Below are positions 319 to 50,944 of a stretch of 64,000 bases of DNA, piece by piece (within the stretch, counting starts at the first letter, position 1; each line of letters opens with the position of its first letter). Under the pieces are notes generated by a model. It worked only from the letters and a program-made list of their open reading frames with translations, ran no database searches and was not told where the DNA came from. Both the position numbers and the translations under genes were made by a program. The DNA lies in the IMG/VR virus record IMGVR_UViG_3300009158_000031, positions 62,001 through 126,000 of that record; one strand, given 5' to 3'.

Positions 319-957
319 ATGAAATTTTACAAATATCATGAATTTCTAAATGAGGCATCTATTGCATCGGTGATTGATAGAATAGGAAATGAAGAGAATA
401 TTCAAATTGAAAATATGGATGATTATGTTAATCATTTCATAAATATAGGCGCAAAAAGGATTGCCGGCGGTTCATCTGCTGAAATACTCGAATACCAAGG
501 TGGAGTTATCAAGATATATGCTCCTATCAATGATCCAGGAATGACTAGATATTTAGCATTTTGTTTATCTAATAAAACGAATTCATATACTCCTAAAATA
601 GAAAAAATTCTAAAGGTTTGGGCCAATGAAGAAAGATGGATATTTGCAGTATTCATGGAAAATCTAGAAAAACCAAGTGGAGATTTTACCAATGAATTAA
701 ACATGTATTTAGAAACTCAATTAAAGGGATATCGTTTCGGTAATAATAAAGAGGATACCAACTTTTTTGAAGGTTTAAAATCTATTATAATTAAATATTC
801 AAAAGATTCAGATAAAAAATCTTTAAACGATATAATTGCATTCCTTAATGGATCAATTGACAAATATCGATATCAGGTAGATTTTGGTCCTCAGAATTGG
901 ATGATGCGAAGAGGTCAATTAGTTTTAATTGATCCATTTTGGCCAAGTATGGAATAG
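319..957 (+). CDS. T7 gp0.7-like Ser/Thr protein kinase with capsid-targeting-like N-terminus
   Basis: Gly loop IAGGSSA, VIK lysine, DPGMTRYLAFC (cf. T7 DSGAAYTAFC), catalytic loop DFGPQN, LIDPF. Likely start MKFYKYHEFLNE at 319. Confidence 0.65.
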   Translation: MKFYKYHEFLNEASIASVIDRIGNEENIQIENMDDYVNHFINIGAKRIAGGSSAEILEYQGGVIKIYAPINDPGMTRYLAFCLSNKTNSYTPKIEKILKVWANEERWIFAVFMENLEKPSGDFTNELNMYLETQLKGYRFGNNKEDTNFFEGLKSIIIKYSKDSDKKSLNDIIAFLNGSIDKYRYQVDFGPQNWMMRRGQLVLIDPFWPSME

Positions 958-994
958 GATTGAATATATAAATTAATATAAAAACAACAAACTA

Positions 995-1300
995 ATGAAT
1001 ATCATTCCAACATTTGATGGATTTATTAACGAAGGAAAGATTTCCATCGGAAAAATGAATTTTTTTGTACGAGTTTTTAACGATGCAAAAGGACTATACG
1101 TACAATTTATACCGGATGGCAAGACTTTAGATAAATTTTCTAAGAATGACATGGTAGAAAATATAAAAGATAAACTAGATTCAGCAATGCCTCAATTTGC
1201 AAGTGCTCTTTGGTTCGCAATTGACAATCAAGCCACAGGAGTAATTTTCAGATTAGACCCATATAAATTAGAAGAAATAATTACAAAAGCTATTAAATAA
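995..1300 (+). CDS. hypothetical protein, putative internal head protein
   Basis: N-terminus MNIIPTFDGFINE; AATATATA motif upstream. Confidence 0.6.
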   Translation: MNIIPTFDGFINEGKISIGKMNFFVRVFNDAKGLYVQFIPDGKTLDKFSKNDMVENIKDKLDSAMPQFASALWFAIDNQATGVIFRLDPYKLEEIITKAIK

Positions 1301-1665
1301 TGAAAACATTCAAAGAATATCTTATTGAAAGTAATACTTTCTCTGAAGAAGAAATCAAAGCACTTAATGAAAATCTTAAGTCTGAATTAACTGAAGCTGA
1401 AGAAGCTAAAATCGATAAAGCTATCAAAGAATTTTGTAGTCAATATCTTGATAAAAACAAGAATATAAAAGAATTTAATGAAGAGCTTACAAATGAAGGT
1501 TTTCTAGGATCTATCCTAGGAGGTCTTACCGGTTTTGCTCTAGGATCTTCGATCGGTAAAATTATTGCAAATGTACTAGGTATTGAGAGAGGCGTAATTT
1601 ACGATTTACTAACAAGTAGACTTGTTGGAGCTGCATTAGGTGCTGCATTAGGAAAACGTGTATGA
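1300..1665 (+). CDS. hypothetical protein with C-terminal glycine-zipper hydrophobic helices
   Basis: MKTFKEYLIE start; GFLGSILGGLTGFALG and GAALGAALG repeats; coupled to neighbours. Confidence 0.65.
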   Translation: MKTFKEYLIESNTFSEEEIKALNENLKSELTEAEEAKIDKAIKEFCSQYLDKNKNIKEFNEELTNEGFLGSILGGLTGFALGSSIGKIIANVLGIERGVIYDLLTSRLVGAALGAALGKRV

Positions 1666-2279
1666 TAATAGGAATTGATTTCTCAATTAACAGTACAGCC
1701 GTATCTATAAACGAAGGAGGTAACCTCACTCTATTTTCATTCGTTCCAAATTTTCAATCAGGTAAAGCCGCATTCAGAACACATGATGCAATACGAGAAA
1801 TTGTCACGGTTGTTAGCTATAATAAAGAACCTAATACTAAAGATAGTTTAGAAGATCAAAGAATTAAGATTCGTAATGCTAACGAATTATCCGATCAAAT
1901 AATATCTCACATTAGACCTTATTTAGAAGAAGCAGAATTTATCAATATAGAAGGTTTCTCATTTGGATCTAAAGGAAATTCTTTCATCGATCTAATATCA
2001 TACAATACATTTTTAAAAGTAAAACTGCTACAAATTGTAGGAGAGAAGATTTGGGTTATCCCTCCAAAATCTATTAAGAAGCTATATACAGGAAATGGCA
2101 ATGCTTCAAAATGTATGATGGTTAATCGTTTCATGATGGATTCTTCTCCTCTTCGAGATAAAATCACCGAACTTGAATTTATTCAAGAAGGAGAATACGC
2201 TATCCCTAAACCGATTGACGATATTGTTGATGCCGTAGCTCTTTCTCGATTAAACCCGAGTACACAATCCATCATATAA
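1662..2279 (+). CDS. ruvC: RuvC-like Holliday junction resolvase
   Basis: MIIGIDFSINSTA, IEGFSFG, KSIKKLYTGNGNASK, DDIVDAVAL. Confidence 0.8.
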   Translation: MIIGIDFSINSTAVSINEGGNLTLFSFVPNFQSGKAAFRTHDAIREIVTVVSYNKEPNTKDSLEDQRIKIRNANELSDQIISHIRPYLEEAEFINIEGFSFGSKGNSFIDLISYNTFLKVKLLQIVGEKIWVIPPKSIKKLYTGNGNASKCMMVNRFMMDSSPLRDKITELEFIQEGEYAIPKPIDDIVDAVALSRLNPSTQSII

Positions 2280-2300
2280 GTAGTTAAAGACTGTAATTTC

Positions 2301-49303: not shown

Positions 49304-49326
49304 TTATAACCAATTAATATAAACAT

Positions 49327-49521
49327 ATGAAATTAACTATCGATCTTAAATTCTTCGCTTACTTCGTAATTGCATTTCTCGTTTCCTTTTCAATCGTCTC
49401 AGGATTTGCACAAAGGTACATTCATTTTGCTGCCGTGGAAAACGAAATGGCTTGCTTCACACTTTCTTCTACTATGGCCGTAATTTGTTTATTTGCCTCT
49501 TTCGAACGAGTAAAAAAGTAA
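49327..49521 (+). CDS. small two-helix membrane protein
   Basis: Hydrophobic ORF directly after the early promoter. Confidence 0.55.
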   Translation: MKLTIDLKFFAYFVIAFLVSFSIVSGFAQRYIHFAAVENEMACFTLSSTMAVICLFASFERVKK

Positions 49522-49559
49522 TTTGTCAATCATATAATTAAAACAATTCAAATCTTAAT

Positions 49560-50510
49560 ATGAAGGTATCAAATATGTTATGGACCGAGAAATATCGTCC
49601 AAAGGTTCTAGAAGAACTTATTCTCCCTGAACGTGTCTTTGCCAAAGTTAAAAATGGCGTATATCAAAATCTACTTTTTTATGGTGGTCCAGGCAGTGGA
49701 AAAACTTCTACGGCAAAAGTACTTGCCAAAGAACATCCAACAATGTATATCAATTGCTCATCAGAAACTGGTGTCGATGTGGTTCGCACAAAAATCACAG
49801 AATTCTGCTCGACTCTTTCTGTAATCGATGGTGAACGTAAAATGAAAGTGGTTATTCTCGACGAGTTCGATGGTGTATCTGATCAATATATGAAAGCTCT
49901 TCGTGGAACAATCGAACAATTTCATAAAACTGCTCGTTTTATTGCAACTTGTAATTACTTCAATAAGATTCCCGATAATATTCAATCTCGATTCGAATGT
50001 ATTAACTTCGACTTTTCCGACGAAGAATCTAAAGAAATCGAAAAGAAATATCTTCGTCGAGTATTTGATATTCTTAAGACTGAAGGTATGGAAATCGAAA
50101 AAGATGCTTTACTTGAATTAGTTCGTCGTAAATTCCCAGATCTTCGTGCTACCATCTCGATTCTTCAAGGTTATAATGCCGAAGGAAGAAATAAAATTAC
50201 ATCCGAAGATGTGAAGAAATTTCATGGTGTATTCCGTGATCTTTACGAACACATATTCTCAACTAATGACGAAATCAAGAATTATCAATTTCTCGTTTCC
50301 AATTACTCAAATCGAGTTGAAGATGTTATTCAAGCATTAGGAACTGAATTTATCGAATATATTCAACTCGAAAAACCTCATCTAATGCGTAAAGTTGGTG
50401 AAATCTGTTTCGAAACAAATCGACACTCTTACGAACAACGTTTTGTAATTGATCCGGTAATTACCATGCTTTCTTTGGTTTATAAAATACAGGCAATCGT
50501 ACGATCTTAA
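49560..50510 (+). CDS. 44: clamp loader large subunit (gp44/RFC)
   Basis: WTEKYRP, GGPGSGKT, ILDEFD, IQSRF, FPDLR. Confidence 0.95.
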   Translation: MKVSNMLWTEKYRPKVLEELILPERVFAKVKNGVYQNLLFYGGPGSGKTSTAKVLAKEHPTMYINCSSETGVDVVRTKITEFCSTLSVIDGERKMKVVILDEFDGVSDQYMKALRGTIEQFHKTARFIATCNYFNKIPDNIQSRFECINFDFSDEESKEIEKKYLRRVFDILKTEGMEIEKDALLELVRRKFPDLRATISILQGYNAEGRNKITSEDVKKFHGVFRDLYEHIFSTNDEIKNYQFLVSNYSNRVEDVIQALGTEFIEYIQLEKPHLMRKVGEICFETNRHSYEQRFVIDPVITMLSLVYKIQAIVRS

Positions 50511-50545
50511 ATCACTAGATATATAAAGTAATAAAACATCAGAAT

Positions 50546-50944
50546 ATGAAACATATACAAAATTTTGAGGAATTCGTTAACGAATCGATCATAAACGAAG
50601 GTAAATTCACTGACGTTTGGCCAACAATGCCTTACGGAGATTGGAAATCTGAATATGACATTCCAAATAGCATTCAAAAAGAGCTATACCTGGAACTTCA
50701 ATCTAAATTAGGTTCTAAGTCAGTAAAGGTAAAAGAAGACATTGAAGACCGAGCAAAATCTCCAGTATTTAATGAATTTATTACGATGCCAGAATGGAAT
50801 ATGTTTTATAATTGGACTAATCGTTCTGAATCTACTACCGTTGCTGCTTTTGAATTAAAAAATGGAGAAATTGCAGTTGCCGTATATCAAACGTATTCAA
50901 GGAGCGATCCAAAAACCACACAAATGTGGACTATTACTAAATAA
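50546..50944 (+). CDS. putative internal head protein
   Basis: GATATATA upstream; MKHIQNFEEFVNESIINE start. Confidence 0.6.
   Translation: MKHIQNFEEFVNESIINEGKFTDVWPTMPYGDWKSEYDIPNSIQKELYLELQSKLGSKSVKVKEDIEDRAKSPVFNEFITMPEWNMFYNWTNRSESTTVAAFELKNGEIAVAVYQTYSRSDPKTTQMWTITK

Follow-up and report, generated by a model that had tools for sequence, protein, structure and literature searches.

About 43 proteins of an uncultured freshwater phage, nearly all unrelated in the rest of their sequence, open with the same short leader, which is quite probably a capsid targeting sequence (CTS) of the type that phage T4 uses as a cleavable propeptide on its internal proteins. The phage is represented by IMG/VR record IMGVR_UViG_3300009158_000031 (254,393 bp, 33% GC, nearly all genes on the + strand), which comes from a freshwater lake metagenome. 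We analysed its bases 62001-126000, a 64-kb stretch called the window here, and positions refer to the window unless they are given as genome coordinates. The leader in this genome is a short amphipathic peptide with the consensus M-K-x-[ILV]-x-x-[FY]-x-x-F-[LIV]-N-E, the four near-invariant positions of which equal Y4, F7, I8 and E10 of the T4 internal protein IPIII in identity and spacing. This match, together with genes for a portal, an S77-family protease and a gp23-type capsid protein in the middle of the window, supports the proposal of an earlier sequence-only reading of the window that these proteins would carry a T4-like CTS cut by a gp21-like protease. That reading also saw the set as effectors delivered into the host before gene expression, which is too strong if extended to all carriers, as such leaders are also found on an annotated scaffolding protein of phage PAU and on T4 core and scaffold proteins, which are degraded. 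By analogy with T4, there is about an even chance that the majority of the set is ejected into the host and acts there.

Extent of the leader set and selection on the peptide

The sequence-only reading had counted about 15 leader proteins, and all of them are real: the 14 starts and the one internal copy that it listed were found on the + strand. The number itself was an undercount. When looser variants with shifted or weaker sites are included, about 43 genes carry the leader genome-wide, about three times more and 13% of all genes, and they lie in ten clusters, with 15 carriers in the window. Further clusters are at genome coordinates 5084, 12539-14170, 133186-141685 (11 genes), 177285-187859 and 217410-224666. 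Starts were corrected in two cases: for the open reading frame (ORF) at 304, the start codon is the ATG at 319, on which the orthologues agree, and the ORF at 47121 starts with two methionines, its orthologues opening with either MMNLKYF or MNLKYF.

A genome-wide motif scan, of the kind that the earlier reading had proposed as a check, showed that 35 of the 333 genes have the heptad [FYW]xx[FW][LIVF][NST]E among the first 20 residues of their products, against a chance expectation of 0.075 on average and 1 at most in 200 per-protein shuffles; outside N-termini, the heptad has just 3 matches in the 79,372-aa proteome. All 30 matches of at least 19 bits in a six-frame scan with a position-specific scoring matrix (PSSM) sit 2-4 residues past an ATG. 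As the matrix was built from these same N-termini, this check is partly circular, and the independent gain is that no comparable copy occurs elsewhere in the six frames. A strict back-translated DNA pattern matched the genome 19 times on the forward strand and never on the reverse strand, with 0-1 matches in the reversed-sequence control.

The leaders are 10-17 residues long from the initiator methionine, and up to about 25 residues counting a second site. The aromatic pair, [FY] and then F or W three residues on, is present in 34 of 34 strict members. Directly after the second aromatic residue comes the predicted cut site, [LIV]-[N/S/T]-E, and a Gly, Ala or Ser follows it in about 70% of these 34 members compared with about 19% in the proteome. 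The codons behind the peptide are mixed, with TTT used 13 times, TTC 10, TAT 7 and TAC 4 for the first aromatic residue and eight different codons in use at the [LIV] position. With the first 18 residues removed, the bodies of the 43 proteins yield only 2 similar pairs (BLAST, E<1e-3), so that their earlier description as unrelated proteins was apt. Mixed synonymous codons on unrelated bodies show that selection acts on the peptide, and the leader is therefore selected as a peptide and not as DNA. A DNA repeat or recombination cassette was ruled out by the mixed codon usage, and a signal peptide by the composition of the leader.

The T4 signal and the head genes

The T4 genome (NC_000866) confirms the comparison on which the sequence-only reading was based: IPII and IPIII open with MKTYQEFIAE followed by Ala, and for IPI the opening is MKTFKEF, with the cut after ITE at residue 19. 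According to the review by Kuhn and Thomas (PMC9026906), packaging needs no more of IPIII than its first 10 residues. In the mutagenesis reviewed there, targeting depended mainly on residues 4 and 7, and residues 8 and 10 governed processing (PMC9026906); the predicted cut site of the leader fits these processing determinants.

All head genes and leader genes for which window coordinates are given lie on the + strand. The T4 gp20-type portal gene (38027-39640; PF07230, E 5e-71) is followed by that of a prohead protease (39682-41583), in which a gp21/S77 domain at residues ~1-200 (PF03420, E 6e-13; phrog_207, E 6e-42; PDB 5JBL, T4 gp21, E 8e-5) is joined to a long acidic repeat-rich tail. LDHPK and ISSR of the protease align with His85 and Ser140 of T4 gp21, which we take to be its catalytic pair, both positions also carrying Ala substitutions in the crystallised chain. 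The tail holds 33 [LIVM]xE sites and is scaffold-like by composition only. Next comes the gene of the gp23-type major capsid protein (41692-43302; PF07068, E 4e-36), with [LIV]xE sites in its propeptide (LINE then S, PIIE then S, LYE then N) that align with those of T4, PAU and Tenacibaculum phage PTm1 in an alignment that also includes the capsid protein of the uncultured phage LR756500. T4 gp23 has NKWKPLLE then G at the position of SKWAPIIE then S here. The mature capsid protein of PAU is reported to comprise 520 of 585 residues (PMC5646251), which is consistent with a predicted cut at L-M-E near residue 64.

Judged by the capsid protein, the nearest relative is LR756500, a 462-kb phage (54% identity), followed by the Lak megaphages (40%) and by Tenacibaculum phages pT24 and PTm1 and phage PAU (all ~33%). 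PAU is labelled a 'Sphingomonas' phage, but its host is actually a Sphingobacterium, as the title of PMC3738902 states.

Two further observations concern the head module. Residues ~17-33 (VNGMGAPALPGNPGTQAGF) of a 78-aa ORF at 16281-16517 closely copy capsid residues ~52-70 (VNGMGATRFPGNPGTQDAF), a stretch just past the predicted capsid propeptide, and this ORF could be a capsid N-terminal mimic or fragment. A protein with a TnsA-like endonuclease N-terminal domain (36753-37235; PF08722, E 1e-18), encoded between the leader cluster and the portal, may stem from the insertion of a homing or otherwise mobile endonuclease gene among the head genes.

Gene position, upstream box and expression

Six members of the set (31264-36738) are encoded directly upstream of the portal gene and two (47124 and 50546) just downstream of the capsid gene. 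A ATATATAA box precedes the start codons of several genes by 11-35 nt, those for the prohead protease and the tail sheath (phrog_34521) among them. Within 45 nt upstream it precedes 9 of the 43 leader genes compared with 10 of the 290 others (Fisher p = 1.5e-4), and these 10 include the protease and the tail sheath. Measured from the ATG, the box lies 31 nt upstream of 995 (box at 964), 28 nt of 12653, 27 nt of 14094, 25 nt of 31264, 13 nt of 34708, 26 nt of the protease gene at 39682 and 27 nt of 50546. Because a T4 gp55-like late sigma factor is encoded at 33643-33999 (+ strand; phrog_234, E 7.6e-12), we read the box as a putative late promoter. No Shine-Dalgarno-like sequences were found upstream of genes in the genome.

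The phage was also found in lake metatranscriptome assemblies, and sampled words of the capsid gene were matched to 100% in one lake-water metatranscriptome run and to 99% in two others (runs X2-X4). Because it is present in several such assemblies, the phage was probably active in the sampled lake. The best-covered part of 33641-39640 in three of these assemblies is 35953-36738, a weak indication given possible DNA carry-over.

Leader genes and their cargo bodies

The first leader gene of the window (319-957, 212 aa, MKFYKYHEFLNE then A), recognised by its N-terminus and orthologues, has a kinase-like body. The Foldseek matches of its AlphaFold2 model (pLDDT 84.5) are protein kinases only (63 at E<=1e-3), a VIA structure match to protein kinases reaches Z ~8 over model residues 38-209, the sequence has motifs reminiscent of a glycine-rich loop, a catalytic D-x4-N and a DFG-like Asp, and PHROG gives a weak match to a T7 gp0.7-type kinase. 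It is followed by 995-1300 (101 aa, MNIIPTFDGFINE then G, PSSM 29.3 bits) and by 1300-1665 (121 aa), whose N-terminus has the T4-length form MKTFKEYLIE then S. The product of the latter is acidic, with 3.7 [LIV]xE sites per 100 aa, and is probably a core or scaffold part rather than an effector. The gene at 7416-8024 (202 aa, MKHIQSFDDFLNE then E, by N-terminus and PSSM) has a body paralogous to that of a leader member at genome position 222842 (KTSC domain). A weak candidate for an extra member at 12653-12859 (68 aa, MAILKFKQFRNVRNE then T), with Arg at P3, was left out of the 43; its F6/F9/NE15 spacing matches the family of the gene at 14745. The leader at 14094-14354 (86 aa, MKAIPKFNEFKTVGMNE then A) is a variant with a displaced cut site (...KTVGMNE).

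The 341-aa protein of 14745-15770 has a predicted two-part propeptide that its orthologues support, consisting of MKLLNFNEFITHLNE and SQELLLE, followed by AFNSSILQ; its leader is a variant with a three-residue insertion before LNE. Its AlphaFold2 model (pLDDT 77) has no significant match in PDB or BFVD (best E 0.04-0.07, TM <0.3), and assignment as a GNAT after an ESM-Atlas lead was rejected, the score of 0.83 being under the trust level. The adjoining DUF3008 coding stretch (15772-15975; PF11450, E 1e-11) runs in frame and without a stop into MNKHIPTFESFINE at 15976, which bears out the internal copy in 15772 that the sequence-only reading had listed. This copy is the leader of a 100-aa protein (15976-16278, MNKHIPTFESFINE then N, PSSM 28.2 bits). 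In IMG/VR locus L096, a gene with a near-identical N-terminus has its start at the leader and a stop codon 9 codons before it, so that 15976 probably opens a separate gene. Longer relatives of the 14745 family that bear the leader (P0180-P0183) contain DUF3008 as well, and the domain seems to travel with this cargo system.

Of the genes before the portal, 31264-32016 (250 aa, MSIKSYDEFVNE then H, by N-terminus and PSSM) has a cargo with only a weak Atlas lead, to DUF6582. Then come 34008-34286 (92 aa, MSTIKTFSEFINE then A, PSSM 28.8 bits), 34296-34691 (131 aa, MYAIKTFSEFVNE then G, PSSM 29.7 bits) and the leader-like variant 34708-35574 (288 aa, MNHLPTYSDFILGPP), which keeps the aromatic pair and has one hydrophobic segment at residues 90-114. 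The bodies of 35629-35931 (100 aa, MKNLMSFDEFVVNE then A, with a one-residue insertion) and 35953-36738 (261 aa, MKNLKTFSEFVSE then A) are related; the first was assigned by its N-terminus and the second by N-terminus and PSSM. Beyond the capsid gene, the 500-aa product of 47124-48626 ((M)MNLKYFSDFVNE then AK) is a RimK-type ATP-grasp ligase (PF08443, E 2e-34) with a C-terminal Zn_protease-like domain, and that of 50546-50944 (132 aa, MKHIQNFEEFVNE then S, PSSM 28.7 bits) has a second site, INE then G, five residues further on.

Enzymes are thus among the carriers by annotation, as the sequence-only reading had said: besides the RimK-type ligase and the protein-kinase-like fold they include GT2 and PAP2. 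These two, like the DUF5824 and KTSC domains annotated in other leader proteins, are of separate origin. Outside the window, a 507-aa leader protein (genome 185434-186957) contains ESVNE then G/A in four internal repeats, at residues 77, 225, 300 and 350. It resembles a polyprotein or core protein cut repeatedly at the leader's own site and is probably a core/scaffold part and not an effector.

Conservation in relatives

For the RimK-like cargo, at least 120 homologues with 53-96% identity occur in metagenomes, and 120 of the 120 listed open with a leader-like N-terminus, mostly ending in LNE or VNE then AK despite small insertions that separate the aromatic pair from the cut site. The homologue in the T4-like Pelagibacter phage Mosig opens with MQVQPFKNYLEE then Ala, and that in cyanophage S-RIM8 (292 aa) is without a leader; the homologue in Yersinia phage YerA41 is annotated as a 'structural protein' from liquid chromatography-tandem mass spectrometry (LC-MS/MS) of virions. 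About 60 full-length orthologues of 14745-15770 keep both the leader Glu and the second site ([LI][LIV]xE then AFNSSILQ), with a spacer between the two Glu sites that differs in length and sequence. By analogy with T4 IPI, this would look like a disposable propeptide removed by two cuts. For 319-957, 21 homologues were found (19 full-length orthologues and 2 more distant), and all 20 that were aligned keep the leader with an invariant Glu12, one of them with a doubled leader.

A pattern scan of IMG/VR gave at least 167 matches in at least 119 stretches. Among the matches listed, 146 are at the first ATG of an ORF and the consensus is MKHIKLFE[EQ]F[LIV]NE then A/S, with conservation also of H3, I4, K5 and E8, which the pattern left free; the F of the aromatic pair was fixed by the pattern, so that its conservation is not independent. 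The gp23 gene was found in 20 of the 30 leader-bearing contigs of at least 60 kb and in 5 of the 5 that are at least 90% complete, counted on leader-bearing contigs only; the 10 contigs without it are fragments, 20-74% complete. Near-complete relatives have 2-18 strict matches each compared with 0-1 in controls, and the 19 of this genome are the highest density. The published 462-kb genome LR756500 (locus L014), an unannotated record, has 11 exact matches of the type MKYIK[DE]Y..F[IL]NE, and the same approach of reading the cargo is applicable to it.

The strict DNA pattern has no match in PTm1, PAU, T4 or Pelagibacter phage Mosig. It undercounts the phenomenon, because the leaders of those phages, where present, differ in length or sequence. 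In a partial coverage of the literature we found no description of this leader, none of a CTS in Bacteroidota or jumbo T4-like phages, and no CTS set of this size for T4-superfamily jumbo phages.

Interpretation and alternatives

The leader most likely marks proteins for loading into the capsid. We envisage that proteins made late would dock through the aromatic face of the short leader helix onto the scaffolding core of the prohead, and that after closure of the shell the gp21-family protease (39682-41583) would cut after the Glu and at any second sites. The leader peptides would then leave and the mature proteins remain in the head with the DNA, and many of them may be ejected into the next host, as T4 internal proteins and Alt are. 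A smaller part of the set probably consists of polyproteins or of components of the core or scaffold, which would be processed and partly expelled.

Several points weigh against the CTS reading or weaken it. Mature regions do not avoid protease sites (110 internal [LIV]xE observed, 112 expected), and a charge bias like that of the basic internal proteins of T4 is absent, with a median isoelectric point of 5.8 in members and non-members; there is therefore no independent signature of a life next to protease and DNA. Two members have a hydrophobic segment, and the product of 34708-35574 is without the Glu cut site. The 43 carriers are far above the handful in T4, though phiKZ-type phages have at least 50 head proteins. 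The putative late box is near only 9 of the 43 members, the remainder lying in tandem arrays, and metatranscriptome contigs over 33641-39640, at a depth of 0-6, are too thin to time expression. The virion proteome of YerA41 also includes replication enzymes, which makes 'particle-associated' a loose term, and the protein labels in PAU that we compare below are depositor annotations whose experimental basis could not be read. A complex prediction for the protease-scaffold protein with the cargo of 34008-34286 scored 0.00, which in a run without controls is evidence neither way. Finally, as the phage is uncultured and known from a lake metagenome, its leader set is known from genes alone.

Could the leader be a mere protease substrate or activation tag, zymogen-like or serving timed degradation, on proteins that act unpackaged in the producing cell? 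The cut site, [LIV]-N-E plus a small residue, is the most invariant part of the leader, several members have second or repeated sites, and no charge or composition signature marks the cargo as DNA-associated. However, T4 gp21 is established to be active only inside the assembled prohead (PMC9026906, PMC5694885), and the aromatic positions, which in T4 serve targeting and not cleavage, are conserved as well as the cut site. The variant at 34708, with its aromatic pair and no Glu, fits targeting without processing (compare the T4 E10D mutants, PMC9026906), and we consider the tag improbable. A docking helix for a partner or place other than the capsid, be it a chaperone, the membrane, the replication factory or a secretion route, would suit the leader as a short amphipathic helix, which two AlphaFold2 models place at residues 6-13 and 6-21, as well as members unexpected in a capsid (GT2 and PAP2 domains) and the small share of members with a sign of late timing. 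It is nevertheless quite improbable, since the leader is too little hydrophobic for a Sec or lipoprotein signal, tracks gp23-type heads (all five near-complete contigs) and matches the T4 CTS at all four mapped residues; moreover, leader genes flank the head genes and have the putative late box in common with them, and the scaffold and internal capsid proteins annotated in PAU bear an analogous leader.

The shared 5' end might also be a legacy of gene turnover, left by an old diverged paralogue family or by a recombination or translation-start cassette without peptide function. Tandem arrays such as the 11 genes at genome 133186-141685 recall the hyperplastic internal-protein locus of T4, a few neighbours are recognisable as paralogues, and with no Shine-Dalgarno-like sequences the 5' coding sequence could matter for initiation. 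Against this, the mixed synonymous codons mean that the DNA itself is no repeat, bodies of clearly separate origins (ATP-grasp, kinase-like, GT2, PAP2, KTSC and DUF5824) bear the leader, and both the aromatic pair and the Glu site survive indels in orthologues with 50-60% identity, which is purifying selection on the peptide. This explanation is highly improbable, and the three rivals taken together are still unlikely, each being less probable than the CTS reading.

If the leader works as the CTS does in T4, the packaged proteome can be read from sequence for this phage and hundreds of uncultured relatives, a cargo list that otherwise needs a host and virion mass spectrometry. The T4 CTS would then be ancient, with four functional residues common to a phage of E. 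coli and to jumbo phages of lakes despite the distant relationship of their capsid proteins, and it would scale from ~5 to ~40 cargo proteins. The ATP-grasp ligase, the kinase-like protein, the glycosyltransferase and the phosphatase would be candidate early-acting enzymes, the many small leader proteins good anti-defence candidates, and the leader itself would offer a portable tag, taken from nature, with which foreign proteins could be packed into capsids other than that of T4. A wider suggestion, which we would sooner doubt than accept, is that a whole clade of uncultured jumbo phages in the T4 superfamily, found in freshwater and in other settings of low GC and including LR756500, uses a universal loading signal to pack dozens of proteins that are ejected with the DNA as a ready-made arsenal for takeover and counter-defence; in this phage the arsenal would extend to a RimK-type ligase and a minimal protein kinase. 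Such a clade-wide signal would be the phage counterpart of a secretion-system effector repertoire with a common signal peptide.

Other features of the window

An RNA-quality-control cluster occupies 52142-55813, with genes for a TROVE/Ro60-like protein (52575-54164), SmpB (54225-54656; Pfam E 3e-47) and a protein with the head domain of CCA-adding enzymes and poly(A) polymerases (55079-55813). Ahead of the TROVE gene lies a gap of 433 nt without genes (52142-52574), which contains a ATATATAA box at 52158. This gap could hold a gene for a Y-RNA- or transfer-messenger-RNA-like molecule; an Rfam scan at the gathering threshold and ARAGORN found nothing in it, and Rfam and tRNA scans of the whole 64-kb window gave no matches. 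Two adjacent ORFs in 4278-6426 (288 and 425 aa) have similar N-termini (MA, then ..R.FAYN) and no family match, and since a late-promoter-like box lies 35 nt before the first, both may be structural proteins that have gone unrecognised. The ORF at 46646-47134 has a weak treble-clef zinc-finger match, and other annotated genes encode a 609-aa GT2 glycosyltransferase (2301-4130), a 5'-3' exonuclease-domain protein (57658-58929) and an Fpg/Nei-type DNA glycosylase (59387-60205). An alternative genetic code is not needed, as standard-code ORFs already account for 93.5% of the genome.

Comparison with known systems

As in T4, an N-terminal propeptide of 10-19 residues stands on unrelated proteins, those of T4 being IPI, IPII, IPIII and Alt (Mullaney and Black 1996; reviews PMC9026906 and PMC3012670). 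The two phages also have in common the aromatics three residues apart, the [ILV]-x-Glu followed by a small residue, and the presence of a gp21-family protease and of gp20 and gp23 in the same genome. The leader of gene 1300, MKTFKEYLIE, is of T4 length (compare MKTYQEFIAE and MKTFKEF in T4), whereas the usual leader here is three residues longer (13 aa) and has Asn fixed before the Glu. Unlike T4, with its handful of carriers, this phage has about 43, many of them with a second predicted cut site downstream and 500-aa enzymes among them; its protease is fused to a scaffold-like protein, and it is a freshwater jumbo phage that is uncultured and known from genes alone.

Phage PAU has a related T4-type head (capsid protein 33% identical) and likewise one leader common to many ORFs. 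About 27 of them open with MKT[LI][ST]xLYE, often ending in KLNE then A/S, and they are clustered round the portal, protease and capsid genes. Among the carriers are two proteins that the depositors marked 'internal capsid protein' (gp142, gp154) and one marked 'scaffolding' (gp152). The PAU leader (MKTLTQLYEAKLNE) differs in having Leu-Tyr in place of the F-x-x-F pair, and the protease and scaffold, fused here, are separate genes in PAU. This comparison shows that a phage-specific common leader on predicted head-internal proteins is a feature of this wider group of phages and, because the 'scaffolding' gp152 carries one, that such a leader is not confined to ejected effectors.

A further comparison is with the inner-body and ejection proteins of the giant phages phiKZ, 201phi2-1 and SPN3US, in which a gp21-related protease cleaves 50 or more head proteins after Glu. 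Propeptides are believed to direct proteins into the proheads of these phages, and packaged enzymes are ejected (PMC5694885). Their propeptides are mostly longer than 100 residues, with no shared short consensus and a [SAG]-x-E cut site (PMC5694885, PMC9026906). The leaders described here, with 10-17 aa and L, I or V at P3, are not of the phiKZ type, and the head proteins of those phages are only distantly related to the ones in this genome. The Dar anti-restriction proteins of P1 and the ejection proteins of P22 are similar in being packaged in the head and delivered with the DNA. They are incorporated hierarchically, protein by protein, and we know of no common cleavable N-terminal consensus or gp21-type processing among them. 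The leader set thus belongs to a known kind, that of the T4 CTS and internal proteins and of propeptide loading in giant phages, and what is new here is its unusually large size.

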